A DNA stretch of 64,000 nt from NCBI GenBank assembly GCA_964199315.1, contig OZ116699.1, positions 31,620,001 to 31,684,000 of the forward strand. The letters are read 5' to 3'. Shown here piece by piece: positions 43,286-64,000 of the stretch (position 1 is the first letter of the stretch; every line of letters starts with the position of its first letter). The stretch is from Orbicella franksi. Taxonomy: Eukaryota. A program made the translations under genes and the position numbers. The notes beneath the pieces were generated by a model. It saw only the letters and a list, made by a program, of their open reading frames with translations. It was not told where the DNA came from and did no database searches.

Positions 43286-46200
43286 CTAACTAAAATGTGA
43301 ACGCTCGTGTGCGGAAAGGTGGTCTTTCCTCTTGGCGGCATATCCACAAATGGCACACTGGAAGGGTTTTTCATCATTATGTCGGCTGTTCATGTGACGA
43401 AGAACGGATCTTTTCTGGGTAAACAAGGAGTGACAGATCTCGCACTTGAATCTCTTCTTGGACTTGGGCTTGACAAATTTTCCTGGACGTATTGATGACA
43501 CTTCATCTTGTTTGTCGCATGTTACCTCGGGACAAGATACGTGTCGTTTTCGCAAAGATTTGAGATTGCTCTTGCTCTGTAAAGACCACAAAATGGTTCT
43601 CAACGGCTGTCTGGGCAATCTCTTGATATTGCACGAGGATTCGCCAGTGCACCCATGATGAATTTTGTCAACGTGTTTACTCCATTCGCTTTTTGTGCGG
43701 AGAGTTGTACAACAAATCTCACATTTGTATGGTTCACTGGTCGTTACAGCCACGGAAGGTCTAGTCTTAAGGCAGTTTCCAGCATCGGAACTACCATCTC
43801 GAAGGATGTTTCTTTGTGAAGGGGAAATATGTCGCCTTGTTGGGTCTCCATGAGAGTAACTGGACGCACTTTCGTTGCATACAGCATTGAACGAGTCTGA
43901 CAACTCGGAAACCTTCATAGTCGGCAATGCCTTCGAATCCGTGACCCCTTGATCGGCTAAGGCTTGAGACCCAGAATGAACAAGGAAAAAGTGCTTGTAT
44001 TGGAGACTGAACGTAGAGAATCTCTTGTCACAAAATTCGCACGGAAATGGTTTACTGCTAGTTACAGTTTGCCTATTGAAGGACCACATTCCCGCAGGGT
44101 CGCCAGATCCGAAGTTGACATCGTGCCTTCTGAATTTCTTGTTTTCAGGTTGACAATCTAAGTTTGATACGTCTTTCTTTCTTTTTATAGGAGTTGATGA
44201 AGATGCAATGCTTCGATCACTGCAAAACAACGGCATTGCTGCACTAGTCTTGTCAGTGGGAACTTGTGGTTTCAACTGGCAGACCTTGGAAAAGGCGTTG
44301 GTAACTCCAGTGTGTGCAAGCATAACGTGTCTGTAACGACTAGTAACTTGGAGGAATTGCTTAGGGCAATATTCGCACGGAAATGCCTTGTTCCTTGGAT
44401 AGCACTTTTTTGCGTGCGGTCCATCTATACAAGCTCTTGATTTACCCTCGCGGTTATTTTCATCTTTACTCCATAGTGGCCTCTCGTGCAAAGTTTTGCT
44501 GATGAAAGTCTTATCCACATCAAGTTTGGGCCGCAAAGACGAAGGTGCAACTTGATTTCCATGCGATTTTATCTCATGTCTGCCACGGCAACCTCTACTA
44601 AGGAACTCTCTTCTAGAGTACCAGCATCTAAACCGATTACATTGGACGGTGTGTTTTGTCCCTCGTGTACCCGCTTTCATTCTAACCGTCTTGAATTTCA
44701 CCCCTCTTGGCTGAGCATTAAGATTCCTGGCTACTCTGTGATCTTCACAATTCTGGAAAGCCTTTACGCTTACATTTGCTGCACAAGCTTGGGGAATAGA
44801 GCTGTTCTTCCTTTCAGACTGATTAACAAAGCGTGTGCATGAACCATGATAATTCGATCCAAATTCCTTTCCGTGTGCAATCATGATGTGCTTGTAAAGG
44901 CTATTAATTTTAGAAACGCCTTTTTGGCAGTATTGGCACTTGAACGCCCTTGCTGAGGCCAATAATTGACCATTTTTCTTCTGACGAAGGCAATGCATCT
45001 CGTCCTGAATAACACTACTGACAAACTCGTCTTCACACCCAGACCCGTTGTCATTTCCTTCGAGAGACAATTCTTTATTACAATGAATACAATAGACACA
45101 TTTGTTGCCACTTCCGAATGCAAAGAATCGAGCTTTGCAACGACGGCACACTTCCAGTGCTCCCAGGGTCGTTCCACTGTTGGTGACCTCAGTGCCATCT
45201 TTTCCTTCCTGCTTGCAGTCTTGGTCAGGAGATTGATACCTCTTCTTCCTGGAGTGCTTTTTCGTGACGTGTTTTTTCATACCACTTACACTCTGGAAGA
45301 CCTTAATGCAGAACTGGCATTTCCAAGGAGCAATTTTTGCCGGTACTGACCACGACTGCGTTCTCTCGGTTACGTTGCTGTTGTCGATCTCGATGCCATC
45401 TTTCTCCTCTGGCTTGCACACTTTGTGAGATGCTTCAGACTTTATCCGACTGGAGTGTCTTTTCTTGACATGTTTTTGCATACAACTGACACTCTGGCAT
45501 ACCTTACTGCAGAACTGGCATTTCCAAGGAGCAAGTTTTACCCATTCTGACCACGACTGCGTTCTCTCGGTCGCTTTGCTGTTGTTGATCTCGATGTCAT
45601 CTTTCTCCTCTGGCTTACACCCTTGATGAGATACTTCAGACTTCCTTCTCTTGAGGTGTTTTTTCTTGACATGTTTTTCCACACCACTGACACTAGGGAA
45701 TACCTTACTGCAGAACCGGCATTTCCAAGGAGCAATATTTAGCCATTCTGACCACGACTGCGTTCTCCCGGTTACTTTGCTGTTAGTGGTCTCGATGCCA
45801 TCTTTCTCCTGTGGCTTACACCCTTGGCGAGAAGCTTCAGACTTCCTCCTCTTGGAGTGGTTTTTCTTGACATGTTTTTTCATGCCACTGACGCTCTGAA
45901 ATACCTTACTACAGAACTCGCATTTCCAAGGGGCAATCGTATCTGCTTCTGAACACGTGTGTGTTCTCTCGGCCACTTTGCTGTTGGTCGTCTCGATGCC
46001 ATCTTTGTCTTCTTTCTTGCACCCTTGTTGATCTTCAGACCTCTTCCCCTTGGCGTGTTTATTCTTGACATGCTTTTTCATAGCACTGCCATTCTGGAAT
46101 ACTTCACTACAGTACGGGCATTTCCAAAGTCCAACTTTGCTCTCCTCACTATGGTACTTTCGCATGTGTTTGTAGCGACCCTTGCACGTCATGAATCGCT

Positions 46201-48654
46201 TATCACAATGCAGACAACAAATCTGTGGAACCCTTAACGCTTCACATTTCACTGGATCAGTCTCGGTCGATGAAGGGCACTTCTGGTCCTGCTTTACAGA
46301 GTCGTGTTTCAAAAAGTGTCTTAGTCGTCCCTGAACAGTTCGGAATCCTTCACCACAGCGTTGACATTTGTATGGCCGATCGTGCTGATTTCGTTTGTGT
46401 CGCAATAAATTTTGCTTAAACGAAAACCCTTTACGACAGAAAGGGCACGCAAAAGCGGTTTTTATTCCAGCATGCGAACGCTTGTGTTGAGACAAGGAAC
46501 GTCTGGACTGGAATGACTCGCAGCAAACTTTACAAACACGAGGTTCCTGTGTATTTGCATCAACGACTTGTTTGGGTAAAGTAAACTGCATCTTACCAAA
46601 CCGAGAGTGATGACTTTTATGCGATCTCAATGAATCTTTTGAGGTGAATTCTCTTGCACAAACATCGCATTTGAAGCGTTTATCTTCTGATAGAAATTTT
46701 GAAGATTTGGGTGATGGATTTGGCGGTGACGAATGATTAGAATGAGAAGTGTTTCGACTGTGGTGAGTCATGTGAGAGCGTAAAGATGTTTCCTTATGGA
46801 AAGATTCGTTGTAGACCTTACAATGGACAGCTGAACTTTCGACCCGTTTCACAGAAGACCAAGAGACACTTAGGGCATTTTCAGCACGGTGGCATTTATG
46901 CTGGCGCAGTGATTCTTTCGAATTGAATGGTTTGTCACAACGATCACAGGACATTTCTCGAACTCGTTTCTTTTTCCGAAAATGGCAACCTTTGTGGCAG
47001 TGCATCAACCGCAAAGAAGGGAACTCTTTACAGCAAACTCCACATGTGAACTGTCCATTCCTGGGTTGAGCCGTGTCCAGGCGTGGAGTTTCCTTATTTG
47101 GCGTTATGGATGAGACACCAAACGGATTCAGTAGTGCTCGATTTTTCTTCCTAAAGTGGGCAGCTCTGTGGCAATACATCAAGGACAAAGAAGAAAAAAC
47201 TTTAGCACAGAATTCGCATCTAAACTTCTCACTACTGTATGCTGTATGATCTTGAGAAGAACTCTGGGAAATGTTGTATTTGCCGTCTAATGCTTGCATA
47301 GTTCTCGCGGACTCGGATTCCTGCGCGGTGGCACCTTCGTTCATCGATACCTTTCGGTAAATGTATGGACTTTCCTTATTTGACACTTTGGATGTCACAC
47401 CAAGCGAAACCGGCAGGGTTGGATTTTTCTTCCTAAAGTGGGCAGCCCTGTGGCAATGCATCAAGGACAAAGAAGGAAAACCTTTGGTACAGAATTCACA
47501 TCTAAACTCCACGCTGCTGTATACTGTTTGATCTTGCGAAGGTCTCTGAGATATGTTGTGTTTTCCATCTGATGCTTGCACAGTTCTCTTGGACTCGGAG
47601 TCCTGCGTCGTTGTACCTTCGTTCACCTTTGCCTTTTGGTAAACGCATGCGTGATTGAGTAGCTGACATTCTGGAAACGTAAAGTTACACTGACTGCATT
47701 TAACAGATTCAAGTGAGGATTGTTTGGAGTCATATTTTCTTGTTTCATGTTTCATGGCAATGTGTACAGCTAACTCACGTTTAGAAACACACACCTTTGC
47801 GCACTTTCTACACTTGATAATCTTAACCCGTGGGTGCTTTTCTCGAATGTGCCTTGCTAAGTTGAAAGAATAAGCAAAGGGAGCCTTACAAATCTGGCAA
47901 ACATGGCAGGTCGAGTACTTTTTACCTCTTACTACCAATAAACCTTTTGTGGGAAAATTCTGCACAGAGTTTGAAGTTGTCTTCTGAGAAATCCCTCCTT
48001 TGTCAGACTTGCCTTCGCTCACGTTTTTGTTAACATGAATTCTCTTGTGATTAGATAAACCAATTCCAGACGTGAAACAAAGACCGCAATGCTGACACTT
48101 GTAGGGTTCTGCAAGGAAGGAAGGCTTATGCAAAGCTTCATGCCTAAGTAAATTCTCTTTCTTTCGAAAGAGCTTACCGCATGTTTTGCACGTACATGCA
48201 TCAGCATTCCTGTGTAGCAACCGTTTCTTGTGCCGCCTCAGACATTTCCAGTCAGCAAACGCTTTGTCACATTCAGTACATTCAAACTTGCCATTGGAAA
48301 GACGTCTGTATGCGTGAACTGTCTTTTCATGGTGTCCAAGACTAATTGAATTGCTAAACACCATGCCACACATCTTGCAACTGCAAATCATATTGAAGTG
48401 CAGGCTATGGTGCCTATTTCTCGACGATGGATGGGAGAAGACTTTGCCACAAATCCGACATGCATAAGGCTTGAGGCCTTTATGGATGTTCTTGTGTCTT
48501 TGTAGACTTTGAGGTGTTTTAAAGCTTCTGTCGCAGTGGATGCACCGCCAGAGGTGGTGCTCGTTGTTTATTTGACAGCGGAACTTGTTGTGAGTGGCCA
48601 GGGAAGATGGTCCTGAACAGACCATGAAGCACTTTTGACACTGTATCGGTCCAT
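43286..48654 (-). CDS. Terminal 5.37-kb exon encoding the zinc-finger array of the PRDM gene
   Basis: Uninterrupted 1789-codon frame with about 28 C2H2/C2HC fingers plus several degenerate ones (counted by eye). Acceptor tttttatacag at 48655. Confidence 0.95.
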
Positions 48655-51600
48655 CTGTATAAAAAGAAATATACAGGAAAAGTCTCATTTACAGCTACCG
48701 CTATTTTCTTTTTGTTGAGTTCTGAAATACAAAAATCGAAGCCAATCACATCATCAAAATAGTGGAACACATGCCTGCAATTTTGTCAGATTCATCTTTA
48801 TTTAATATATCCAAATCGCAAGCGTATCTGTCTCCGTACCACACCAGGAGCTCCATGCCGGGCTCAATTGTCTTGTAGGCGCGATAGTAAATTTCACCTC
48901 GGAACTGGAAGGCTACAAGATTCTGCTCATCATCATTACGGGCACAGTTCACAAAACGTAGCCAATTACTGTTTTCCTCATCCCGAGCATCAACAACATG
49001 CGTGACACGTCCATTTTCAATTATCTGCAAATGAGAAGAGTTCACCTGAGACGCAGTAGAACTGTTTCACTGCTGGTTTACAAGTTTTATGCCGAGGCAA
49101 ACGCAAAATTAAACTATGTTCACGCAAGCGACATGAATTCGATACACCTTTCTACAAAGGTGGATGTTCGGTTTGTGTTTGCGATGTTAACAAATCAAAC
49201 AAACGCAAACCAAAATGCTAGAAAAGGGACAACCTGCGATTTTTTCCGACGCCTAGTTTTATTATGGTAAATATCCTCACATGTTCTTGCGTGTAAACCA
49301 TACTTTATGGGTAGGAAAGATAACTACAACGCTGGCGGATTTTACTCCTTAGAACTGAATAACGACGACTTCGAGTTTTTATCTTGCCTAGACCTAATAT
49401 CTTACAAGTGACCCTACAACGTTAGACGGGAAAACAAGTTATAGCTTAGTGAGAAGTTTGACTCAGCCCTAAGTTTTTGATACCGAAGTTGCTAAGCAAT
49501 ATTACGGTTTCTGAGAACGACTACTCAGCGAACTTGTACTAATTATAAGGTTCTTTCTTACATCCCACATGTAGCTCTGATCCATGCTTGGAGTTACATC
49601 TGTCACGCCTATCTTTTGGCCCCAGTAAGGGCCAAAGACTACATCACTTTCAAATCTCTCTTTGGCAAAGATTCCCAATCCGGCATCTAAAACGAACAGG
49701 CACAATTTAATACCACTGAACAAACACTTGACTCTTTTGCATTCTTGACCACAACAAAACAACAAAATTTACGTTCTCACAGAATATTGCTTCAAGGTGG
49801 TCGATTGGCCAATCTTAACTTGCTTCCTGTCATAATATTACTATAGGAAACTGAGTTACGATTCAGATTTGCCACTCATAAGACTGGATATCTCCGGCTT
49901 TTCCCTGATTTTTCAGTTTACCACAAAAAATTCAAATTGTCAATTTCTTACTTTTCCTAGAATGTGGAAACTCTACAAGATGCTCTGCTAGTGTTTTTGA
50001 CTGACCATCTATCTAGTTGTTAGCTATCAAGATGTTAGTTGAAGGAGTCGTGTCACAATACTTTTAGTTGTTGTCTGCGAGTCACAAAATTTGGTACCTT
50101 CAAAATGTAAGAGACCTCAAAATCATACTGTGCTACAACATGTAAGATAAACAAGCATCAAAAGGCAACAATTAAACAAAAATGCTGTGCGGTTGTTGTA
50201 GAATGGGGATGTTTACAAAGGATTGTGACTGAAAACCGTGAAGAAATTAGGCCAAACTTTTCAAGATGGACAAACCGTGACCTAGCTTTTATCAACAACT
50301 TTTGAAACAAATTGCGCTAGTAATCCAATCGAGACAATCAGATTTTACCCACCCGGTATACTTGAAGTCTTCAAATCCATGTTACTTGGAATAGTGGACC
50401 TTGCTTTCGTCAGTCCTTCTTTTACGAACACATCTGTGGGTTCCTTAACCCACTTCAAACTACCATGAACGGAACAATTACCAATGCGCAGTTTGTCACA
50501 CTGACTGCAAACTAAACAAGACTCCCAATGTTAGTTTCAAGGTTTGGTCATGAAATGAGACAGATGCCCGAGATTGAAAGGGCATGACTACAAAACCATG
50601 CAATCGGAAGTTGGCAATATTTAAAGGACTTGGTTGATAGATGATAAAGTTTGTCTCCAGCAACTTTTTCCATCCAAACCTTTTTATTTTAAAAAACTTT
50701 CAAAACGCCACAAAAATGTGCAGTATAAAGAAAATTATCTAAAGAATCAATGGTCTCAAAATGGACAGTCGCACAAGTCCATGCTTGACTAGTTTGTCAT
50801 GCTCTTTCCATTTTTGGCATCAAGTTCGTTTCACAGCTAGTTTTAAACAGGTAAGGTCATGTGACAAAGTTATGCAATGATCTTAATACTCAGACCCTAC
50901 AATATTTACCAGTGTAATCATGCAGAAAAGCTTTTAAAGATTGTGAATTTTATTAAAAAAAAGAAACAGCTTAATTTCTCATCAAGATACATCAGGGTAA
51001 GTCTGCATGTACTTGCCGATATGACACAAAACTGTACAACATACAAGAGTCAAACAAAACAGATCAAGTTTTGTGTAAGAAAGAACAGTTTCCCTTACAT
51101 ATACAATATCGTTTTCCTGCGAAAGGACCTCATCAAAAACTGAATTGAATGCTTATGACAAATTTTGAAAAATAAAAGCGCTGAGAGACACCAGTCCAAT
51201 TGTATCCCTAACAGGTACCACTTCTAATATCTTTGCTTGCTGAGATGTCAGTTGTTTCTTTTATTTGGAATGTACTCAAAGAGAGACGACTATCAAAACT
51301 TAAAATTGAAATCCCTAAGCAATACTAAAATACAATTTTCAGCTCCTAAAAAGTAGAGTGAGCATTGGCAAGTTCCCATACTAAGTGTGTTGTTTATGAA
51401 TCTACTTACAAATATACTCATCCTCTTCCAGTTCTATTCTCTTGTTGATGCAATTTGTAGTAAATCTTAGTTTCTGAAAATACATTAATTTTACAGAGCA
51501 ATAATGTGCATCATATACACATACAGTATTACACGTTCCATTAATAAATTTGCTGCCTTTGTTGAGAAAACTAGACACCCCATTTGTAACTTTGAGTCAT

Positions 51601-52951
51601 TTTCCTCCCTTCTCAAAACCACCACTCCAAATTCTAATTCAACAACGGTGCAGGAACACATCTGACAAGTCCATGAGAGCTCCTCTGGTTTTCATGGGCC
51701 GATGAAAATCACATTACATTTTCCATAGTTTAGAAAAATTGTCTTTGTTTATGTCCATCTGAACTGCAGCAGTTCTTACCTCCAAAGGAATTGAAAATTC
51801 CTGAATTCTTGGTTCACATCTGGGTATACCAGCAGCAGCAGCATCAGAGGGTACAATCGGTTCTTCAAAGCCCTTAACAGAGAAATCATGAGAACATCCA
51901 TTTACAGCAATTGAAAAAAATAAACAAATAATCAACAGTTCCGAAACCTGTCCTTAAAAACATGAAACCAGTTGTGATGTGCCAAGTTGTTCAAAGTAGC
52001 CCCAATGAACAAAACAGTGGGAGGGAGGGTTGTGCACAAGAGCCCTTTCCCAGCTGTATCAGTGTATACTACTGTAAACTTTGTGTAGTAGCAATGGTTT
52101 TATTAGGGTAGGGGAACGTGGAGGCCTTTTCTATCAATATCAACCACCAGTATTTCTCTGAAGCAGTACATGTGTATATCAGCATTCACGTACAAAAAAC
52201 ATGGCAGAAGACTGTCAGGCTAATTGAATAAACAAGATGCGACAACAAATGTCACCAGCTCCAGGTAGACCAGAAAGGGCTAAGCTTCCAAAAAACAGTG
52301 AAGTACGAGCATGAGGAATGAAAGCATTCCTTCCTGCCATTTTTGTGGCAGACAATGAGACCCGGGCTAAAGTTTTTGCTTGCATGTAACATCTGCTAAG
52401 CTTTGTTTTGAGAAATGTGCAGTCACAAATTGGCAAGTCATTTTGTTTAAATGACTAATAATTTGCACGGAAGTGAGAATGTTGACTAATAATTTGCACA
52501 GAAGTGAAAATGTTCTAGTGATAGTGTTTCAAGTGAAAATTTACCCACCAGTTTACCAAACATTTTTGTAAACTAAGAGATGAATTAATCTCATTTATTG
52601 CAACCCAGATAATCATTTAGAGAGAATCAAGTACATCCTTGAGGAGTGATCTAGATATGGCAAAGTTTAACAAAGTTAGGTTGGATGTTACCTCACAAGG
52701 GAAAGCATCAACAACTTTTCCCTCCTCATAAGAGGCAATGTCAATAACTCCTTCTTCTTCATTGTTGACTTCAGCTTTGACATCAGAAGTTGTGTTAGAC
52801 CCCTAAGAATAAAATAAATTTGTGTTTAGTACCTTCTTGTTGCTTAATAAGTAATTGTATTCTGACCATTTGCCACAAGCATCACAGGGACAAAGAAACA
52901 ATTATTATGGAAGACCAGCTAGTTACATGTAGAATTATACCCTGTACACCC

Positions 52952-52988
<37 letters not shown>

Positions 52989-54920
52989 TGAACAAACCAA
53001 GCCAGTGAATCTGTTTGGGCATCTTTCATGGAGAAATGAGAGGCCCATTTGGGCTTGAGGAAAGCCCCCAGGGCAGGAGAGAGGGTAAACAAAAAACTGA
53101 AACAATCAAATGAACAAGATGAAGTGGTTATATTACAACTGATTTCGACTAGATTTCGACTAGTGTCCCTGTGTTCCTTCAACCATTCTTCTTGGGTACA
53201 GTGACCCACGGTCGCTCAGAGCCAAAGATTTTGTTCGACCCTGAACCTGTGGGTTCCACCAGATTTTTGCCTCTTTGGCTTCTTCAAATATGAAAATGGG
53301 CAAGGAGTTTTCTTGCATTTTCGTCCTGACATAAAGAAAATTTGAAAAGAATGAAAGCTAACTTGCGATGAAACAACCAGATTGAGAACAGCTCACGTGC
53401 ACAAATGAAATATCACACTGCAATTCGCATTACACGTGACAACTGGCAGTGAACAGACTTAATCATGGTTCTTGACGCCATCTTGATGGCTAGGCAAAGC
53501 GGTTAGAAGTTACAGTGTTTGTATGGGAATTCGATGGCAAATAACTTTTTGTAAAATGGAATTTTACACAATTTGTGAATGGCAATGTTAAACTAATAGG
53601 TGGAAGATTGTATTCACCAAGTTTGAAGGATGTAGCTTGGCTAGAAGATGCTCAGTTCATTTCTCTTATTTTCCATACATCTGTCTGTAAAATTTGGCTG
53701 GGTAGGCAGACATGTAGAGGGGGTATGCAAGAAAAAAATTACAGACAAATGTTACCTCACATGAGACAACATCAACTTCTTCTTCCTCACAAGAGACAAT
53801 GTCAATAACTCCTTCCTCTTCACTGTTGACTTCAGCCCTGACATCAAAACTTGCATAAGAGTCCTGACAATAGAATGAATTTGTGTTGCTTAGTAAATTA
53901 CTGTATTTTGAACACACTGATGGCCTGATTTCAAGTCTATGATCTTCCAAAAACTGGTTGGATGCTCTCAACTGCTGACCTACAGGAGACTTGTGTTGAG
54001 CTGCTAGGCCATTTACAAGGTTCATATACAGGATTCTTGTTAAGTTTTCATTCAGGCAGTTAGAAAGAAGAAATAGCAGGTAACATTGTTACCTGCCCCA
54101 CCTGCCGGGGGTGTGGGGACTCTGCCCCAGTGGGGGTCTCCTGGGTTTTCAGTGCATCCAAGGATCTTTCCACATGTCTCAAGGCACTCTTTTTCATATA
54201 ATGTTAAAGGAAGTATTAACCATTTTTATACCAAGCTGGCAGAGGCCGTTTTCGAGACATGACAAGATGGATTACTTCAACACATCCTTTATTTTCAATG
54301 CAATGATGTCTTCTAGATTTCTCAACTTAGGGTTAGTGACTAGAAGGAGTGACTAGAAGGAGAACAGCAAGATTTTCCAAAACCTTCAACACAATGGGTA
54401 TTCACTTTTGAACAAACAAGCATCCATCATAAATTTGATAAATACTCCAGTGAAATAGGTAGTAACTTTTACTCAAACAGCTGGTAAAATGAACTGGTTA
54501 CAGACTCTTAACAAGAACCCTGATGCGTGATATACATTGTTACATACATCCAGCATACTACAAGGAACAGTAACAGCCAGTGAGAAAAGTGTGATGATAT
54601 ATACAAAGCAGGGCTCCAAACGAACTCCAGCTTGCCCTTTGGACCGGTAGCTGTCAAATTTTGCTTGCCTTGGATGAGGCTTAGTTTGCTCTTTATTGAT
54701 TTAGTTGACCAATGACATACCTGAGCCCTTGCCCATTGGGCAAATGAGAATCTAAAGTTACTTGCCCCAGACGACAGGATGGCACTTATTTTGTGCCTCG
54801 CAAAGGTGGTAAATCTTTCGCTTATTCATACTTACTGTAATAGCCGTGAGCTATGATGTTGAGAACAAGAGGCGATATATACATATCTTATTAGATGTTT
54901 TGGTGTGTAGTATCGCTGTA

Positions 54921-54962
<42 letters not shown>

Positions 54963-57900
54963 TCGTCAAAATACAAACAACAAGTAAAAACATACAGCGA
55001 TACATGCATGTGCTGCATGGAGCTTTGTCAAGATTTCCTTCTGTAGTACAGTGGGGATAATGATGCGGTGGCTTTTCATGGCCGTACCATCTTCTACAGC
55101 AAGTTCATTGCAAAAGGGCTAATAAGGTTTTAAGGGCACTGGGACTTGCTGGATGGTTGACGGCCAACCAGAGTGGATCAGTTCCTTAAGTGCGTTGAGC
55201 TCTGGGTCCGACGCGGTTTGTCCTCTAATTCTCTGCAGAATGCTGTTACTGAATTGAGGGTGGATGTCGTGCACTTGAACATTCATCCCAGGGATGGCTT
55301 CTTTTTCTTCTGGTGATAACCTGGAGAGTGCATCCACAATTTCAATGCTTTTGCCTTGTTGGTAGCGGATGACAAGGTCATATGGTTGCAGTCTCAGTAG
55401 CATTCTCTGAAGATGCAGGGGTGCGGCTGTCAAGTGTTTTAGGTGTATATTCTCAAGGGGCTTGTGGTCAGTATTGACAGTGAAACTGTGACCAAATAGG
55501 TAAGTGTGAGACTTCTCACACCTGTACACCACAGCAAGTAGTTCTTGTTCAATGTTTGTATATCTTGTTTCCACATGAATGAGTGCTTTGCTCGCAAAAG
55601 CAACAGGCATGTGTTGTCTTGTCTGAGTGCTCTGCCTAGGCCTTTCAGCAAAGTGTCAACTTTTAACATGATCTCCTTCTTTGGATCAAAGTAGGTTAAA
55701 CTAACGTCACTACTGACAGAGTCTTTGCTGTAGGCATCTTGCAGTGCTGGGCTCTAATCAAATTGGTGGCTTTCCTTTAGGAGCTCTTGAAGTGGGGCTG
55801 TTAGAGTGCTTAAATTTGGGATGAAGGGACCCATGTAGATTGCCAGACCTAAGAAGGTCTGCAGTTCTTGGCGGATAGTTGGAGCTGACATTTGTTTCAG
55901 TGCTGAGATTTTGTTTCGATCAGGCTGGAGCCCACCTTGGCTACAGACAACACCATAAAATCTGATTTTCTCCTGCTTCACATAGCATTTATCAGGGTGC
56001 AGTTTCAGGCCTGTATCTTGGCATTATCTTAGCATACCATGCATGCTGTGGTCATGTTCCTCACTAGTTTGTCCAAAAACTACGATGTCGTCTGTAATTC
56101 CTGCCACTACTCCACAGCCCTCAAATGTTTGGTCAATTTTGGGCTGAAAGATGTCTTATGATATTTTCAGCCCAAAGTGCATGCGGTTGAATCTGTATCT
56201 GCAGGGTCTCAACCTCCCATTTTGTTTCTGTCAGTAGACTAGACTGTTAACCCAGGGTGGGGGTTCACCTTCCTTAAGTTTTGTGATGCAATTCTTGGCA
56301 ATATCATCTAATTCACTTTTGATGTCATGCACGATGGAGGGTGAATCACTGGTGGAATATTGGGGTCGACTGCGATGTGGTATTCTCCTTGAAACTTCCT
56401 GACAATATTAAAACACTCAGGGTATTGTGTAATCAGATCCTGCTTGTCTCTTATCAGGATGGTTTCCTTGGCTTGCTCAGGAGTCTTGTCCTTTAGGCAT
56501 CCATTAATGCTGGTTGGGGATGTTGTGTCTGTATAGCAAAATTGAACTGTAGCAGATTCAGGTCAGTGGAGGTTGGCAGGCCAATGATTGTGGGACCTGG
56601 TATGTCAGTGATGCAAAAGGGTGCGAGTGTGCTCTCTTTCCCATAGTTGTAGGGTATAGTGACTTTGCCACTTGCGAGCCTCCGTAGACAGTGGGCACAA
56701 CATTCAAGGACAACTATGCATTGGGTTTGAGTTTATCATTGTTGTTTACTTGATCTGGGTACATCTCACAGTAAAGCCTCATGGGTAGTATGTTGCACTG
56801 GGCACCAATGTCAAGCTTGGCTCTCAGTGTGGTCTTCCTGTTATTGCTCTGCGCCAGGTTTACTTGAATGGATACAAATACTTCATCTCGACTAGACTCT
56901 GGTGTCCCATGTGTTAAATTTGCTACAGTGCCTGATTAAAAAACAATAGATTCGAAGGATGTCTGAGCTGCAGAATCTTCCCAATCTTTGATGACGTGAA
57001 TCCATTGTCTGATGCGTTGAGGGTGACCACAGTTCCCACAATCCCCTGGGAGGCTTGAAAGATGGAGATGGCTGATTTGGTGGAAGGTGTGCTAAGTATA
57101 TGGACCCATCTGCAGTTTCAGCTGCCATGGCTGTGAGCTGGGCTTGAGAGGATGCATGTGACCTTGCAATCTCTAAAATTTCATCCAGCACGAGCTTGGC
57201 TCCCTTTGAGATTAACTTTTCTCTGACTTTGAGTGAGTTTGTTTTGAAAACTATTCAGTCTCTCATCATTTCTTCTGGGTCTTTGAAATCGGGATCTTGG
57301 GCTAGAATCCATAATGCCATGAGGAATTTCTCTGCCATTTCTGACGAGTCTTGGACTGGACTGTGTAATTTGAACCTGGTGAAAACAGGATTTGCTTTGG
57401 GACTTATGTGACTCTCAGAACGTTCGTAGTATGTTCCTAATTTCCTATGTTCATCATCGTGTTGTGGATATCCCTTCCTTTCTGACCAACCCAGATGAGC
57501 AAATAGCTGCATTTTTCCTCTTCTGTTCTGAATTTCAGAGGTCCTGTAAACATCAGCTCGACTGCTTGAAACGCCACCAGTTTTCTTTCGGGTTGTCGCC
57601 TTTCCACTACATAACCGGGCATTTGATGATGCTTAACACCATGTTTCCGAGGTTTTTGGTTTACTTCTGACACCATGTAATAGCCACAGGCTATTATGTC
57701 AAGAACAGGAGGCGATATGTCAAGACAGGAGGTAACATAGCTTTTTATTTGCTTTAATATCTAAACAACAAGGGGAGAACTACATACAAAAGAACGCAAG
57801 GCACAATGGTTCACATGCTGTTTGCGTCACCAGAAGTGCATTCGAAGTACACAGGGTTCTCCCTTGTTTTCAGTACAACAGGTAAAAGAGCATTTTAAAC

Positions 57901-60900
57901 CGGTAAAGCAATCAGGTGAATCGCAGCCTTGTTTATTAGGTCTGCTCTGTACATTACATGAAATGAAAATTTGCCCCATTCTTGTCTTTCCAAGACAGGT
58001 GTGTCATTCTTGAGTTGCAAAGCCACTTCATCGCCGATGTTGTCGTTTCCTAATAAAAACATTTTCTTTGAAAATACCTCCATCTAATATGCCTTACAGT
58101 TTACTAATTTTACACCTTTGGCTGTAGATGTGAAATGAAATCAAACAGCACTTTCATCTTTAAGTGTTTTATTCTTTGTCTTAATTCTCTTGCCCTAAAG
58201 TCACAGAAAACTTCCAGGGTATCCTCGCTGTGCTTACATGAAGTGTCACTACAAAATCAGCGGTCGTCTCTCAAAACCAAACGAAATCGCTGCATATTCA
58301 TTTTCATTCACGTTCTGGAAGGGTTTTATTGTCAAGGATTCTCTCAAAACGTCGTCTGAAAATAGATTTCAAACACTTTTGACCTGAATGTGGAGCATTT
58401 CGTGACGAAGATGAAGTTTTCGATCACCACACGTGAATGTTGGTCAATTTAGCAACACCAGTTTTCTAAAGCCGATAGTTAGGTGGGGAGTTCATGGAAC
58501 TGATTTCCCCACATTGCTTGCAAATCAAATACTTGTAACGTCTAAAATTACTTTATTTGTAACTGTTTCCATTCGTGACTTCTTGCCATTGCTGATGGAA
58601 AGAAATGAGAACAATGTTCATAGTCGCTTCATCGTGAAACTGAACGTAAACAACTACTGATGCATGTGTGAAGAAATGACATCTGCCACGATGGAATGGT
58701 GGCAGAAAGCCCGCCAAAAATTTGCGGATCTTGCCTCGAAGTTCGAAAGCCACAGATACTACTTACAAACCATAGCCTGCGCAGTTTATCTTTTAATCTG
58801 TTTATTTATTTATTCTTTTACAAGGATAATATACCGATTATGTCGGTGAAACAACTATATATTTTTTTTCTTTTACCTGTTGAATTTTCAAGAATTCCAA
58901 GGGATTTTAGGTGGTAGCGAGTGGTGCTACAGGCCGTAAATTTTACCGGTTACCGCCTGAAAAGGAGAACGCTGAGTACATATCATCACACTTACACAAC
59001 GTAAAAATTTCATTCACCCCCTTATTTTACTACTTCAAAATTTTGATACCTTTTTCTTGACACCTTACAGTATTACAATATTTACAAACTATGAACTGAG
59101 TATTTAGCAGTTCTGTCAATATTTGTATGTACACTGTGCAATAACATAAACTGATGAGGGGTACCTCACAAGAGAGTGTGTCTCTAAGTACTTCCACTTC
59201 AGTATTCACTTGACCTTTGGCATCACACGTTGTTTTTTGATCCTGTGAATTAGAAATATAGAAAAGAAATTTGAGGACCAAGCTGGAAGGGGGGTTGGCA
59301 GTACAAATAAAAAATTCTAGAGATATACATTAGATGATATTAAATGGTGGTGCAAAGATATGGACTTAAGTTTCAAGTGGTAAAAAGAAGTATAGGAATA
59401 AAAATATTGCTTTTAACATGAGAAAATAAAATTTATATCTTCCTGCCATCAAGCAGTTTTCTTTTTACAATATAGACAAACTGACTGTTTGCACAAACAC
59501 TTGTGAAAAAGTGGGAAATAATGTCATCACTGTCCTCACCACTGACGGTATAAAAGATGTGCAACTTGAGTCTCAGATGTAGTTTCACATGAATTTTAGA
59601 AATAGTGTATTTTCCAGCAAAATGCTTATTTCCATAACTTTAATAAAATATAGTACTTGTTGCATTATTATTGCACATGGCAGCTGGCACACACACTGGT
59701 GATCACCTGTTAATTTCAGCTCATCAAAATTAATGCTCTTGCATGATTAAACCAGCATAAAAGGTCAGTCAAAGGATATCAACCCTCTCTGTATGGCAAT
59801 TTGTGTCTGCAAGTCCACATTGTTAAAACTTTGTGATCTTCTGTATATTGATTTGAAAACTTTGTATCCTCTTACAGGAATTGCCCGCTGGTTATTTCAT
59901 TGATTTTTATTTTTACCCATAATTGCATTTTTTAGTGTCAAACACATTATTTTGTTTTCATGTGCCTAGCAATGTCACATATCTGCTTTTTTTGTCCAAA
60001 TTTATAATCAGAGTTGAACAATTCACCCACATTTACAGCCAATGTGCCACCTGGCAGCTGACAAGATGTTACCTCACAAGGGACAATGTCAACATTTGTT
60101 ATGTCTTCCTCTTCGCTGTTTGCTTCATGTTTGATATCAGAATTTGCCTCAGCATCCTGAAAGTTAAATAAAGAGTGGGCACTAATTTTATTTGTTGCCT
60201 GGTTTAACACAAATTCATGGTTCAATGTTTACTTAAGTTTTCTTGATATGTATTCAGCTTAACAGTAGAATGATATGAGACTGTGGCTTAAGGCACTTTG
60301 TTAAAAATACAGAACAAACTGTAACATCAACTGAAATGTCACCTCACAAAAAACCATGTCAAGACTCTTTTCATCTTCACTGTCCACTTGAGGTTCTACA
60401 TCAGAACTTGTCTCAGAGTCCTGGCATTTTCACAAAAATAGCTACATAAGTATGTAAAGCTTTCTGATTCTTCATACATTACTACAGTCATACATAATAT
60501 TATATTACAATAAATTAATCACCAGCCAGTTGGGAAGGGAGGAAAATTAAAAAATGGTCAAGCACACCATGCAAAGAAAGTCTAATCCAATAGTCTGGGC
60601 CAGTGATCTTTGTTTACAAGATGAGCATGAAGGAAATTAAGTCAGAAAGTAATACATCATTTTAAAAAGGCTAGTGAGAGAGTCTTTTGGACAAGTACAT
60701 CATAGGTATTAAGAGCTTGCCAGAGGGGCAGGCCTGAAAATTGGTTTCCACTGCATTCTGCAAGGTTTGAATTTCTTTCACTCTGTTGGCTTTTACAAAC
60801 ACATCTTCTAAAAAGAGTGCTCTCAAGCTACATATATTTTCTAACTTCATACATGTAGTTCTTGTTATTATTACTACACATACATGCAGAGTTCTAATGG

Positions 60901-61258
60901 TAATAAAAAAAAGTTTACCTGAAATTGGGACATATGATGGTCAAAAAAAAAAAAAATTAAAAGTTCCTCATAGCATATTAAATGAGACTTCTAATTTAGT
61001 ACAGTAAACCCTACAGTTAGGCTTAAAAAGTTGCTCATCAAAGATTATCACTGCATCTCCATGGCAACTCACATTCCCAACTGTGAGGACTTTTCAAGAA
61101 CACCACTGAGATCAAAGGATTATACAAGACTGTAATAAGTGAACCCATAATATATTACTAACCTCAAAGGGTACTGGCCCATGTTCTTTCTCAAACAGAT
61201 ATTGAAATTTTGGTAGAAGGTCTGGTTCTGTCAGTAGTTGTACTATCTGTACAGGCAT
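43286..61258 (-). CDS. PRDM7/9-like PR/SET-domain zinc-finger protein (~2204 aa): acidic exon repeats, zinc knuckle, PR/SET, ~30 zinc fingers
   Basis: 12 exons join in frame (6615 nt): 61258-61163, 60420-60343, 60156-60073, 59242-59165, 53863-53756, 52802-52692, 51872-51780, 51473-51410, 50511-50353, 49686-49562, 49024-48775 (GC donor), 48654-43286. Zinc knuckle [88 protein letters not shown] closely matches the PRDM9-type domain. The six PR/ZF-proximal exons are firm. The six upstream exons rest on splice sites, phase and mutual similarity, and the true start may lie further upstream. Confidence 0.88.
45170..46126 (-). repeat. Coding minisatellite: five ~201-bp units, each one C2H2 finger plus a ~43-aa linker
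   Basis: WKC codons recur at spacings of 198, 201, 201 and 201 bp (catttcca at 46119, 45921, 45720, 45519, 45318). Unit consensus APWKCxFCSKVFQSVSGMKKHVKKxHSKRxKSExSxQGCKPEEKDGIExxNSKxTERTQSWS. Confidence 0.95.
47085..47645 (-). repeat. Coding tandem duplication, 2x282 bp (94 aa), each with one C2H2 finger
   Basis: aaagtgggcagc(c/t)ctgtggcaat at 47435 and 47153. The peptide FRCEFCxKxFxSLSLMxCHRAAHFRKKN occurs twice, with a third related finger downstream. Confidence 0.9.
50044..50290. mobile_element. Older, decayed Kolobok-type MITE copy
   Basis: The ends aaggagtcgtgtcaca / accgtgacctagct and the interior aaggattgtgactgaaaaccgtgaa..ttttcaagatg resemble 13018-13212 and 41678-41909. Confidence 0.45.
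54885..55007. repeat. Hairpin repeat at the Gypsy 3' deletion junction
   Basis: Perfect 16-bp stem GTATTTTGACGAGCCC-ata-GGGCTCGTCAAAATAC (54940-54974) inside a longer imperfect palindrome. Confidence 0.75.
55008..57622 (-). pseudogene. Decayed gag-pol of the Gypsy element
   Basis: gag-like ELMFTGPLK..EEEKCSYLLIWVGQKGRDIHNT; protease LRAKLDIGAQCNILP (D-T-G altered); RT RYRFNRMHFGLKIS*DIFQ..GITDDIVVFG with the N-terminal RT segment deleted; RNase H PVAFASKAL..RYTNIEQELLAVV..TDHKPLE; start of the integrase Zn domain ELAVEDG..EILTKLHAAH, then truncated. Many stops and frameshifts. Confidence 0.92.
57852..58974. mobile_element. hAT-like non-autonomous element (1123 bp) with a 6-bp TSD, inserted in the Gypsy 5' LTR
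   Basis: TIR CAG(G/C)GTTCTCC. AGTACA at 57846-57851 and 58975-58980. Extending the duplication to 8 bp gives no match. Confidence 0.8.
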
Positions 61259-61964: not shown

Positions 61965-63195
61965 TAGACTGTTCACAGCCTCTCTATTCACACACGCGAA
62001 AGAAAAAGCGAGCAAGGTGAGCACGAAGCAAGCAGGGGTGGGGGGTGGGGTCTGTGAGCAAAGTGAGCAAGAAGAATAGAGAGTGTAGACATCTTTGGAA
62101 AAAAAAGGACTTATTAGGCTCCTCCCCCTGTTATCGCCTTGTTACTAACAGCTCTGCCCCTTGACCATTTCATTAAATCGGACCAATACAGTCTGAGCCA
62201 TAAATTGCTTGTTTAATTGATTACAAGTATCAGTTTGCAAACAACACATACATGCATTCGGCTGTCATCTCAGATGACTTCAACTCCAAAAAAAAAGTTG
62301 CTTAAAAGGGGAGAAAGCCGAAATCAAACGGTCTTTCTGATTTTTGTAGGATAAGCGCTTGTTCTTTCGCTATTCACCTTGGGAATTTTGGCAAGACAAC
62401 TTACATATCTATGGATAATCTTTTTCTAAAGGTGTTACATGGTGTGGCACTCGTGAACTACAATGAGCATGACAAAATTGTTAAGTGGAGAATCTTCGTT
62501 CTAGAACACGTTTTGGAATTTTGCATCCAAAAAGTCTTCTGCTGTCTTCCAAAAACAAGCTTGTATTTCGCTTCTCCAATAAGGAGAGGCATGTCGTCCT
62601 TTGTTGACAAAACGATGGAAGGAATCCAAAGCTCTTCAGTCTCTTCTACTTATGCTTTCAAGATGCTTTTGAGTGGTGAAAATATGAGAACAACATTCGC
62701 ACCATTTGCATTTCTTTTGCTGTTGCGTAGAGTTGATGATATATCAGACTTTCCGCAAAGCCGGTCTGCAAAAATTGCAACATCTTTCAACCAAAGAAGA
62801 CTAACAGCAGCCTCTTTCTGCTCATCTTTGAGCAAAGAAATGTTATAATTTCTCTTAACAGGATTCTATATTTTTTAAAAACAACCCCTCCATTATGAAT
62901 CACAGCACATGTCATTGATGACAACTACTGCAAGCCGCATAATGCACCTGGATGCAATCATGATCGGCCATTGTCAAGGTGATGACACTCTTGTCACCTT
63001 TCAACCAATGGGAATTTTACATTTCTGGAAAAATGGGGAATTCACTTTTTTTCCAAAGATATCTACAGCCCCTCTCCCCATCCCCTACCCAGTCAAGTCT
63101 TCAGTTTTGCGCTGGTGTCCAGTTGTCTCAGATTCAATCTACATGTTCAACGATCGAATAAAACTACAAGAAAATAGAGGGCTGTGAGCAGTCTC
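61965..63195. mobile_element. AcademH-like DNA transposon derivative (1231 bp)
   Basis: TIR TAGACTG(T/C)TCACAGCC..CTCTATT with the terminal base mutated on the right. The 9-bp TSD GTGATAGAG / GTGATAGAC (61956-61964, 63196-63204) matches at 8 of 9 positions. An internal RecQ-like helicase relic is present. Confidence 0.8.
62444..62850 (-). pseudogene. Decayed RecQ-like SF2 helicase fragment (motifs Q, I, Ia, II)
   Basis: Across frameshifts: LKDEQKEAAVSLL..KDV..LQTGFAESLIY (cf. LPTGxGKSLxYQ), VVLIFSPLKSIL (cf. VxSPLxSL), KYKLVFG..AEDFL, LIVVHECHT (cf. vvDExH). Confidence 0.8.
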
Positions 63196-63254
63196 GTGAT
63201 AGACTTCATCAAACTATGACATAGATGTCGATTCCTTTTTTCACAAATTTAGCT

Positions 63255-63696
63255 CGAAAGACTTGAAATCTCAATGTCAAATTCAGAACGCCTTAATGGT
63301 TTTCAAGTCTTTAAACTGTCTTGTTCTGGAATATCTCACGTCTAAATTTATAAAGCGAAATGAATCAAGCTATTCTCTGAGGGACTCGGTAAACAAACTT
63401 GTTGTCCCCTTTCCAAGAACTAACTACATGAAAAATACTTTTAGTTACAGCGGCGCTACCCTTTGGAACAGCTTACCCTGTAACATTAGAGAGTCAGGTT
63501 CATTGGACAAATTTAAACGCCTTCTCTACCATAATTTTTAAACACGGCATTCATGGAAACCAGGATTTTTCTTAAGTGGCATATTAATGTAAGTTACTAT
63601 AATGTTAGGATTTGGATTTTTAGTCATTATTATGTAATTTTTTCTACCTGATGTTTTTACCGTGTATAAAAAATGATTAAAGATTAAAGATTAAAG
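63255..63696 (+). mobile_element. 5'-truncated L2/CR1-type LINE 3' end
   Basis: ORF2 C-terminus MVFKSLNCLVLEYL..YSLRDSVNKLVVPFPRTNYMKNTFSYSGATLWNSLPCNIRESGSLDKFKRLL*, a 3' UTR starting acacggcattcatggaaaccagg, and a (GATTAAA)3 tail. Confidence 0.88.
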
Positions 63697-64000
63697 TGTG
63701 ACACCAATAACTTGATTACTGTTTTACTTCTCTACAAGTTGTTTCACGAGTTGGTCGAATGCAGTTGAAAAAAAAGGAAAAATGATATAATTTCAATTAA
63801 ACACGAATTCCTGAAGATCGCAAAAATTAGTACCCAGCAAGAAAATAGCCAGTCTTCTTCTGTCGCAAAAGTTAGTTCCCACAAAATACAAAATATTGCC
63901 TATTCATAAAAATAGACTCCTACAAAAATCAGCGCCACAGTGTTCCTAAATTCAATATCTTTCTGTGAACAACCAAAGTTTTACAGACAGATATAACAGG

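Follow-up and report, generated by a model that had tools for sequence, protein, structure and literature searches.

The window (the whole 64-kb stretch of DNA analysed here) carries a minus-strand gene that spans ~61258 down to 43286 and encodes a protein of ~2,200 aa (an open frame of 2,172 codons counted from e1 onward), in which a 153-aa acidic array sits between a short conserved N-terminus and a pre-SET zinc knuckle, with a PRDM9-type PR/SET domain next and C2H2 fingers dispersed over the last ~1,790 aa. Five acidic stretches are coding exons (e1 to e5) near the 5' end of this gene, and the anatomy of the gene and of these exons, listed below with the matches to a repeat-unit HMM, is assigned with high confidence.

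61163..61258, minus strand: upstream coding exon e0, 32 aa; ATG immediately after the AG acceptor; ends in phase 0
60343..60420, minus strand: acidic exon 1 (e1), 26 aa; HMM E 4.5e-7
60073..60156, minus strand: acidic exon 2 (e2), 28 aa; HMM E 6.8e-8
59165..59242, minus strand: acidic exon 3 (e3), 26 aa; HMM E 0.017
53950..59113, minus strand: inserted DNA in the e3-e4 intron; boundaries approximate
53756..53863, minus strand: acidic exon 4 (e4), 36 aa; HMM E 1.2e-11; RNA joint 53756/52802
52692..52802, minus strand: acidic exon 5 (e5), 37 aa; HMM E 1.9e-9; RNA joints on both sides
51780..51872, minus strand: linker exon, 31 aa, phase 0-0; kept in all orthologues (tblastn); RNA joints
51410..51473, minus strand: exon leading into the pre-SET zinc knuckle (K-L-R-F-T-T-N-C-I-N-K-R-I-E-L-E-E-D-E-Y-I)
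50353..50511, minus strand: pre-SET zinc-knuckle exon; RNA joints, frame and relatives
49562..49686, minus strand: PR/SET exon 1 (G-L-G-I-F ... F-G-P-Y-W-G); RNA joints; Pfam PRDM2_PR/SET on orthologues
48775..49024, minus strand: PR/SET exon 2, followed by a GC-AG intron; RNA joints
43286..48654, minus strand: terminal zinc-finger exon, 5.4 kb, ~1,790 codons of dispersed C2H2 fingers

The upstream exon e0, which is absent from the exon list of the first-pass annotation, showed 66% identity with the N-terminus of the Desmophyllum model P0014 (tblastn) and matched no Pfam family. A 7-codon first exon (M-A-Y-x-L-x-Q in relatives) was searched for in the window and not found; upstream of 62011, collinearity between the window and the relative does not hold, and this exon would possibly lie outside the 64 kb. 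The e3-e4 intron, ~150 bp long in relative L002, is enlarged in the window by inserted DNA and contains a degraded LTR-retrotransposon pol remnant (RT_RNaseH at 55122-55610, E 1.7e-17).

Our translations of the five acidic exons on the minus strand agreed exactly with those of the first-pass annotation, and each exon is preceded by AG, followed by GT, has phase 0-0 and ends in TGTGAG, with lengths from e1 to e5 of 78, 84, 78, 108 and 111 nt and donors gtgacat, gtaacat, gtacccc, gtaacat and gtaacat. They resemble one another more closely than chance allows: when the repeats of other species alone, with the window and its close relatives left out, were used to build an HMM, the five exons were its five best matches in six frames of the 64-kb window, followed by the internal sub-repeats of e5 and e4. 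Exon e3, with a V-E-V-L core and a weak donor, is the most divergent unit and clearly the weakest member by HMM E-value. The internal repeat of ~30 nt reported for the last two exons was recovered with 23/30 identical positions in e4 and 19/30 in e5; e4 consists of one full unit (V-I-D-I-V-S-C-E) and a 30-nt internal duplicate (E-E-E-V-D-V-V-S-C-E). Duplication of exons together with their flanks, as originally proposed for the whole set, holds well for e4 and e5 only, which share 81% identity across 142 nt, including 24 nt of the upstream intron, and match in another block of 31 nt upstream, whereas in the other pairs the likeness ends a few bases from the splice sites. A symmetric 78-nt exon was duplicated in tandem to form the array. 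These duplications are old, with exon types 1 and 2 common to Desmophyllum and Oculina, while the e4/e5 split is younger and the 30-nt piece, which holds only the hydrophobic core, underwent further duplication within exons.

That the acidic exons belong to the PRDM gene was borne out by RNA contigs (X1, X2, X13), which run from e4 to e5 and on through x6, x7, x8, x9 and x10, i.e. via five PR/SET exons, to the zinc-finger exon. Raw polyA reads also show joints (three of them cross from e5 to the next exon), with strandedness that agrees with the minus strand; direct RNA joints were read within 48500-54100, that is, from e4 onward. The X13 polyA contig is single, unbranched and 1367 nt long and runs across the array, with a length that fits upstream of e4; from this length and the overhang mismatch count we infer an e3-e4 junction. 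All three words sampled from e3 were present in at least 14 RNA runs (single-exon word search), matches that are only consistent with inclusion because some libraries also hold unspliced RNA (the X2 intron contigs). Inclusion of e1 to e3 is supported indirectly, by the orthologues of e1 and e2, by intact splice sites in a relative and by the length of the X13 contig. Positional orthologues of e1 and e2 occur in the Desmophyllum and Oculina gene models (Oculina KAL9985669.1 for e1), and in a close relative the counterpart of e1 has AG and GT intact and is 95% identical in nucleotides, while that of e2 likewise retains its splice sites. The suggestion that the array is splice-tunable found no counterpart in the RNA, where only the constitutive chain of joints was seen (the unbranched contig coming from one polyA run), and the proposed link to meiotic axes is without basis, the transcript having been assembled from ordinary colony RNA runs. 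Breaks in the X1 and X2 contigs at e4/e5 were considered as exon skipping and rejected, since an unspliced-intron contig reaching 27 nt into e5 (X2) explains the branch.

The PR/SET domain is of PRDM9 type: Pfam PRDM2_PR matched the orthologues with E-values of 1e-39 to 3e-41, and the window PR/SET exons are 84-93% identical to orthologues and 43-52% identical to PRDM9-like proteins throughout Metazoa, with PRDM9-like proteins as the best database matches. The proteins matched by a search with P0014:1-470 were all PRDM9-like PR/SET proteins from other animals, with no N-terminal protein of the window's species among them. Direct reading of the window PR/SET domain places FGPY, IYYR and VWYG at the three catalytic tyrosine positions. 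The absence of KRAB that had been assumed was upheld in the N-terminal 340-480 aa of three orthologues, where Pfam searches gave no KRAB match at E<=1 and PR/SET was the sole domain; PF01352 (KRAB) was likewise missing from the precomputed Pfam lists, and SSXRD (PF09514) had no Pfam match in orthologues. A short K-L-R...E-E-D-E-Y stretch was seen, by direct reading only, at the place equivalent to SSXRD. Compared with canonical PRDM9 (KRAB-SSXRD-PR/SET-tandem ZF), the window gene thus has the pre-SET zinc knuckle and PR/SET in common but lacks KRAB and SSXRD, and its fingers are not arranged in a tandem C2H2 array but scattered over ~1,790 aa. Given the lack of KRAB and SSXRD, the gene is therefore placed, at class level, among the KRAB-less ('truncated') PRDM9 paralogues of cnidarians.

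Such truncated paralogues ('SZ'/'S'), which like the window gene have a PRDM9-type PR/SET without KRAB/SSXRD, are conserved across Scleractinia with a function stated to be unknown (Rudler et al., bioRxiv 2026, doi 10.64898/2026.09.07.749791). The architecture had been put forward as undescribed; the KRAB-less cnidarian paralogues as such are already in that preprint, whereas the acidic array and SUMO have 0 occurrences there (doi 10.64898/2026.09.07.749791). The same preprint reports the SZ paralogue as lost in Montipora, whereas the window gene has a Montipora orthologue (doi 10.64898/2026.09.07.749791). Distinct PRDM9-like genes whose N-terminus is KRAB-like (P0131, P0135 and P0139 types) are present in corals as well.

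The 26-aa unit gave 10 matches among 1.84 billion representatives, all of them orthologous fragments of this gene in corals, and PDB sequences searched with either the unit profile or the Oculina array yielded nothing at E<=10, while the best score in an ESM Atlas feature search was 0.57, with no meaningful match. Orthologous units precede PR/SET in Desmophyllum P0014, Oculina P0008/P0249 and Montipora P0020, and each unit lies between AG and GT in Desmophyllum and in L002/L004, L005 and L006. The survey of exon number across corals proposed at the outset gave 0 units in Acropora, 1 in Montipora, 4-6 in robust corals and about 6 in Desmophyllum; the 0 and 1 of the first two indicate that the array is dispensable for the core function of the protein. 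The units follow the consensus [S/T]-S-D-V-K-x-E-V-N-S-E-E-E-x-V-I-D-[I/V]-V-[S/T]-C-E, in which D7, E16, D21, C25 and E26 reach at least 90% conservation. Over about 8 coral genomes, conservation in the unit is highest at the hydrophobic core with its acidic/Ser flank, V/I-V/I-D-V/I after S-E-E-E being kept in 20/24 units when a core is counted as at least three V/I/L out of four at the aligned position; psi-K-x-E is kept in 12/24. The core is also the piece amplified inside exons, occurring twice in window e4 and as a run of four in Oculina. Comparison with the closest relative of the window gives 19 nonsynonymous against 6 synonymous codon changes in the array (those in the cores conservative), and constraint on it is therefore weak; in one relative e4 carries V-T-D-I and half of e5 is gone, and in another, L002, e3 has decayed through a 2-nt indel and loss of the GT donor.

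A SUMO-interacting motif (SIM) is defined as a four-residue core with at least three hydrophobics, especially V/L/I, plus flanking acidic residues and phosphorylatable Ser/Thr (PMC12751080). As first suggested, cores that fit this published definition are found in e2 (VDIV), e3 (VEVL), e4 (VIDI and VDVV) and e5 (VIDI) (PMC12751080). Looser cores occur in e1 (LDMV, the weak form L-D-M-V-F, in an exon without a psi-K-x-E site) and in the degenerate second sub-unit of e5 (e5b, VVDA), and the flanks fit as well, with N-S-E-E-E just upstream of the core and [S/T]-C-E just downstream. Because the second half of the unit fits a SIM (V/I/L core with an acidic, CK2-type Ser cluster), the array is read, as the likeliest of the explanations but tentatively and at somewhat less than even probability, as a multivalent SUMO-binding platform, and SUMO binding by it is plausible. 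Its 32% D/E composition suggests disorder; an AF2 single-sequence model of P0014:1-470 was uninformative along its whole length (mean pLDDT 31, even in PR/SET). Such an array would anchor the methyltransferase/zinc-finger protein to chromatin proteins that carry several SUMO groups or SUMO chains, or alternatively would bring such proteins to the DNA sites of the protein.

Known SUMO systems offer partial parallels. The mutated SIM cores of RNF4 (IELV, IVDL, VVDL and VVIV) lie within about 35 residues (residues 36-70; PMC11550450), and those experimentally mutated in RNF111 are VVVI, VEIV and VVDL (PMC3678163). The window array resembles both in clustering several cores of the same type in a short acidic stretch; it differs in that each core lies in its own duplicated exon, in its Cys-Glu and upstream psi-K-x-E, and in its effector, which is PR/SET plus zinc fingers, RING being absent from the gene model and from the Pfam lists of the orthologues. 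Neither PDB nor profile searches gave a match between the array and the poly-SIM regions of RNF4 and RNF111, i.e. no sequence homology. The preference of RNF4 and RNF111 for SUMO chains comes from multivalency. The SIM of SETDB1, a histone lysine methyltransferase, links the enzyme to SUMOylated factors of chromatin (KAP1, Sp3, PML bodies), an established case of recruitment to SUMOylated partners through a SIM (PMC13108219). The array would follow the same principle; SETDB1 has a single N-terminal SIM, a different SET class and an H3K9 target, and is not related by descent to the window gene.

In about half of the units psi-K-x-E precedes a stretch of acidic residues (NDSM-type), and for this reason the array itself may be SUMOylated. 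An NDSM is psi-K-x-E/D followed by an acidic stretch (PMC5727262), a description that fits e2 (I-K-H-E, then S-E-E-E-D, then the V-D-I-V core) and e5 (V-K-A-E, then N-N-E-E-E, then V-I-D-I); short patterns of this kind often arise by chance, and this one is kept in half of the units only. We consider it unlikely, but worth stating, that each exon is a paired module of a predicted SUMO acceptor (psi-K-x-E plus acidic tail) and a SUMO reader (V-I-D-I-type core), such that the array, when SUMOylated, would engage itself as well as other SUMOylated factors and seed SUMO-dependent assemblies centred on the PRDM9-derived methyltransferase.

Weighing against SUMO binding are the weak constraint, the decay in relatives, the 0 units in Acropora, the near-invariant Cys-Glu that closes each unit and is outside every SIM definition, and the looseness of the motif itself, which many V/I-rich acidic stretches fit. 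In a rather unlikely alternative, a disordered acidic array acts mainly through charge, as an intramolecular DNA mimic or autoinhibitor of the basic zinc-finger region or as a histone-binding patch, with the V/I cores adding beta-strand contacts to a non-SUMO partner. The array has a net charge of about -41, set against a very basic zinc-finger exon (334 K+R versus 154 D+E), weak amino-acid constraint and a copy number of 0 to about 6 are both typical of charge-driven disordered regions, and the SIM model leaves the invariant Cys unexplained; charge alone, however, accounts neither for the peak of conservation at the V/I-V/I-D-V/I core nor for the renewed amplification of this same piece within exons. 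An acidic transcriptional activation domain that contacts coactivators through acidic residues and interspersed hydrophobics appears improbable, notwithstanding the acidic plus hydrophobic composition of the array and the frequent role of PRDM paralogues as transcription regulators (doi 10.64898/2026.09.07.749791). The hydrophobics of the array are beta-branched V/I in a fixed psi-psi-D-psi-psi pattern, and Cys and the S-E-E-E run are position-specific. Typical acidic activators, by contrast, use aromatic/Leu residues. Least probable is that the repeats lack a specific function, being in-frame exon duplications that are tolerated while they drift in an N-terminal tail the protein can do without, as the near-neutral nonsynonymous/synonymous ratio against the close relative, the decay of exons in relatives and the absence of the unit in Acropora would allow, since robust corals and Montipora share the unit pattern, exon phase and splice sites, and position-specific features of exon types 1 and 2 are retained in Desmophyllum and Oculina.

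In many stony corals, then, one KRAB-less PRDM9 paralogue has a lineage-specific N-terminal module of duplicated symmetric exons, the best-conserved feature of which is a SIM-type motif, and SUMO binding is a candidate role for a paralogue described as of unknown function. The module is a clean case of a linear-motif array growing in two ways, by whole-exon duplication and by intra-exon duplication of the motif alone, and corals provide a natural comparison, from Acropora (0 units) through Montipora (1) to the robust corals (4-6). If the paired acceptor-reader arrangement were true, the array would stand in for the lost KRAB in a way tunable by exon number and would supply a concrete mechanism for this ancient coral PRDM9 paralogue.

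The PR/SET portion of the minus-strand gene matched PRDM9-like proteins throughout animals (43–52% identity), and Pfam analysis of the first 340–480 residues of three orthologues returned PRDM2_PR/SET alone, with no KRAB or SSXRD match in that region, in agreement with the first-pass annotation of a PR/SET gene without KRAB. Other PRDM9-like genes in corals, separate from this one, have a KRAB-like N-terminus. KRAB-less 'truncated' PRDM9 paralogues have been described in 28 cnidarians, some being >540 My old, with their function stated to be unknown (2026 preprint, doi 10.64898/2026.09.07.749791); the text of that preprint mentions neither an acidic array nor SUMO. The protein of the terminal zinc-finger (ZF) exon (43286–48654) was only 74–77% identical to that of relatives (P0002–P0006) with introns 79–88% identical in DNA, so that the finger region is evolving about as fast as non-coding DNA.

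Exons of the gene (window positions, all minus strand; x6–x10 are the linker, pre-SET and PR/SET exons)
61258..61163, minus: e0, coding, 32 aa, ATG immediately after the acceptor
60420..60343, minus: e1, acidic, 78 nt, donor gtgacat
60156..60073, minus: e2, acidic, 84 nt, donor gtaacat
59242..59165, minus: e3, acidic, 78 nt, donor gtacccc
53863..53756, minus: e4, acidic, 108 nt, donor gtaacat, RNA joints
52802..52692, minus: e5, acidic, 111 nt, donor gtaacat, RNA joints
51872..51780, minus: x6, RNA joints
51473..51410, minus: x7, RNA joints
50511..50353, minus: x8, RNA joints
49686..49562, minus: x9, RNA joints
49024..48775, minus: x10, RNA joints, GC-AG intron next
From 48654 downward, minus: ZF exon, RNA joint

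The five acidic exons are real. Re-translation gave peptides identical to those first reported; all five lengths are divisible by 3, each exon is preceded by AG and followed by GT, and the shared TGTGAG ending (5/5) and the donors were as originally read. Mutual similarity was assessed non-circularly with a profile of the 26-aa repeat unit made solely from other corals (Desmophyllum, Oculina, Montipora and two further assemblies) and run over six frames of the whole window, where the top five matches were precisely e4 (E-value 1.2e-11), e5 (1.9e-9), e2 (6.8e-8), e1 (4.5e-7) and e3 (0.017), the last a marginal member of the set. The next-ranked matches were sub-repeats inside e5 and e4, the rest of both strands being far weaker, and the predicted internal repeat of ~30 nt was present in both exons (23/30 identical in e4, 19/30 in e5). 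At the DNA level e4 and e5 were 81% identical across 142 nt, extending into the upstream intron, whereas the remaining pairs (68–76%) were alike essentially over the exon and the first 7–13 intron bases; the proposed exon-plus-flank copying is therefore demonstrable for this youngest pair only.

RNA mapped across 48500–54100 gave a single chain of joints, e4 to e5, x6, x7, x8, x9, x10 and the ZF exon, in contigs of three runs; three of these joints also occurred in raw reads of a polyA run, whose strandedness agrees with minus-strand RNA. Joined together, e1–e5 and the downstream exons form a 2,172-codon open frame ending at 43286. Splicing of the array into the PRDM transcript, as first proposed, is thus carried by RNA joints for e4 and e5 and by indirect evidence for e1–e3. 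All five acidic exons are symmetric and skipping would preserve the frame, but the suggestion that the array is splice-tunable was unsupported, as the joints in the mapped region were constitutive only; contig branching where e4 meets e5, seen in two runs and considered as exon skipping, is accounted for by unspliced RNA. The GC-AG intron (48655–48774, minus, donor gcatgt) separates the last PR/SET exon from the ZF exon, its joint being found in contigs of three runs. Within the e4–e5 intron, 53175–53735 had an RNA word depth of 430–1450, against 10–70 in the exons of the gene, with many loose ends, and probably represents an expressed repeat present in multiple copies. The same intron contains a compound (GT)n(GA)n microsatellite at ~52955–53000; a shorter depth spike lies at 50183–50369.

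Towards the 5' end, e0 and the N-terminus of the Desmophyllum protein shared 66% identity. An unbranched polyA contig (run X13, 1367 nt) carries 399 nt 5' of e4, which would leave a 63-nt leader beyond the 336 nt of e0+e1+e2+e3. Its 11-nt intron-aligned overhang had 2 mismatches to the end of e3 and 3 each to those of e2 and e1, in a comparison that used three reported 'other letters', one of them a listed SNP, and so appears to fit an e3–e4 junction better. Exons e1 and e2 have orthologues that retain both AG and GT in the close relative L004, have positional orthologues in Desmophyllum with the same peculiarities (V-E-P-Q-V in type 1; A-N-S-D...V-P..P-C-E in type 2), and are joined with e0 in the Oculina model KAL9985669.1. 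Among e1–e3, e3 is the doubtful exon: all three of its sampled words occurred in at least 14 RNA runs, weak evidence of inclusion since some libraries hold unspliced RNA, and its counterpart in relative L002 carries an indel of 2 nt and no longer has the GT donor. The e3–e4 intron is ~5.3 kb here against about 150 bp in L002, the extra DNA (~53950–59113) including the degraded remains of an LTR-retrotransposon pol in the same orientation as the gene (RT_RNaseH at 55122–55610). Relatives have a 7-codon first exon, M-A-Y-x-L-x-Q (M-A-Y-A-L-T-Q, L004 14335–14315; M-A-Y-V-L-S-Q, L003 3001–3021), which was not found within the window; over 62011–64000 the window and the upstream sequence of the relative are not collinear, and the exon may lie beyond the window end.

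Across corals the unit consensus was D-S-x-T-S-S-D-V-K-x-E-V-x-S-E-E-E-x-V-I-D-I-V-S-C-E, with D7, E16, D21, C25 and E26 at least 90% conserved. Scans of 10 kb upstream of the ZF exon, together with annotated proteins, gave no unit in several Acropora species, one in Montipora, two and four at loci L006 and L005, six in Desmophyllum (one per exon), and in Oculina two units, one partial unit and one unit with three further cores in tandem behind it; L007 and L008 had none within 10 kb. In relatives L002/L004, e1, e2, e4 and e5 are intact and e3 is decayed, and in L001, within the same 10 kb, e4 carries V-T-D-I and e5 is half lost. Against 1.84 billion representative proteins a profile of the unit had only 10 matches, all coral ORF fragments or models of this gene, indicating a module restricted to the lineage of this one gene and turning over by birth and death. 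The Oculina patagonica annotation appears to split the gene into P0249 (ACROYT_G008095; e0-e1-e2) and the nearby P0008 (ACROYT_G008097; remaining acidic units, PR/SET and fingers). In place of the acidic array of robust corals, orthologues from acroporids have another short repeat, of the G-A-L-Q-x-E-L-T-P-P-x-S-L-K-D type (P0020 residues 34–110, P0027 residues 1–60).

The core of a SUMO-interacting motif (SIM) spans four residues, three or more of them hydrophobic and above all V/L/I, and is aided by adjoining acidic and phosphorylatable Ser/Thr residues, often CK2 sites, and by a beta-strand extension on the other side (PMC12751080). In sequence the units fit this description, as had been claimed: an S-E-E-E run precedes V-I-D-I-V and [S/T]-C-E, with a SIM-type core at the aligned position in 20 of 24. 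The 153-residue array holds five strict cores (VDIV, VEVL, VIDI, VDVV, VIDI) and two looser ones, of the same types as functional SIM cores that have been mutated in the ubiquitin ligases RNF4 (IELV, IVDL, VVDL, VVIV, residues 36–70; PMC11550450) and RNF111 (VVVI, VEIV, VVDL; PMC3678163). The piece amplified again within exons is the core itself, as expected if motif valency matters. In half of the units (12/24) psi-K-x-E/D stands 7–9 residues upstream with the acidic run next, an NDSM-type SUMO acceptor pattern (PMC5727262); in the window it is present in e2 and e5, e4 has R for K, and e1 and e3 are without it. PDB sequence searches with the unit profile and the Oculina array found no homology to solved SIM peptides. 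Neither the SIM model nor any of the alternatives explains the near-invariant Cys-Glu closing every unit (e.g. 53756–53761), which reflects more than splice-site constraint since it also closes exon-internal units.

Our best reading, tentative and drawn from sequence, is a multivalent SUMO-binding array, a putative platform that would anchor the PR/SET/zinc-finger protein at chromatin factors rich in SUMO; SETDB1 offers the nearest parallel, its SIM bringing that methyltransferase to SUMOylated KAP1, Sp3 and PML bodies (PMC13108219). Somewhat unlikely, but a serious competitor, is action by charge, the array masking the very basic finger region or binding histones; an acidic activation domain is improbable. 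The four alignable acidic exons were 91.9% identical to the closest relative (79–88% for intron-rich stretches), with 19 nonsynonymous against 6 synonymous codon changes, a sign of weak constraint, and with conservative core substitutions (M/V to I, D to E). Functionless exon copies under drift are the least probable reading. Absence in Acropora and decay in relatives show that the array is modulatory, not essential. The first-pass annotation knew of no description of the architecture; the gene itself falls in a recently described class, its N-terminal acidic module is undescribed within the literature searched, and a SUMO-binding role for that module would be a reasonable and testable proposal.
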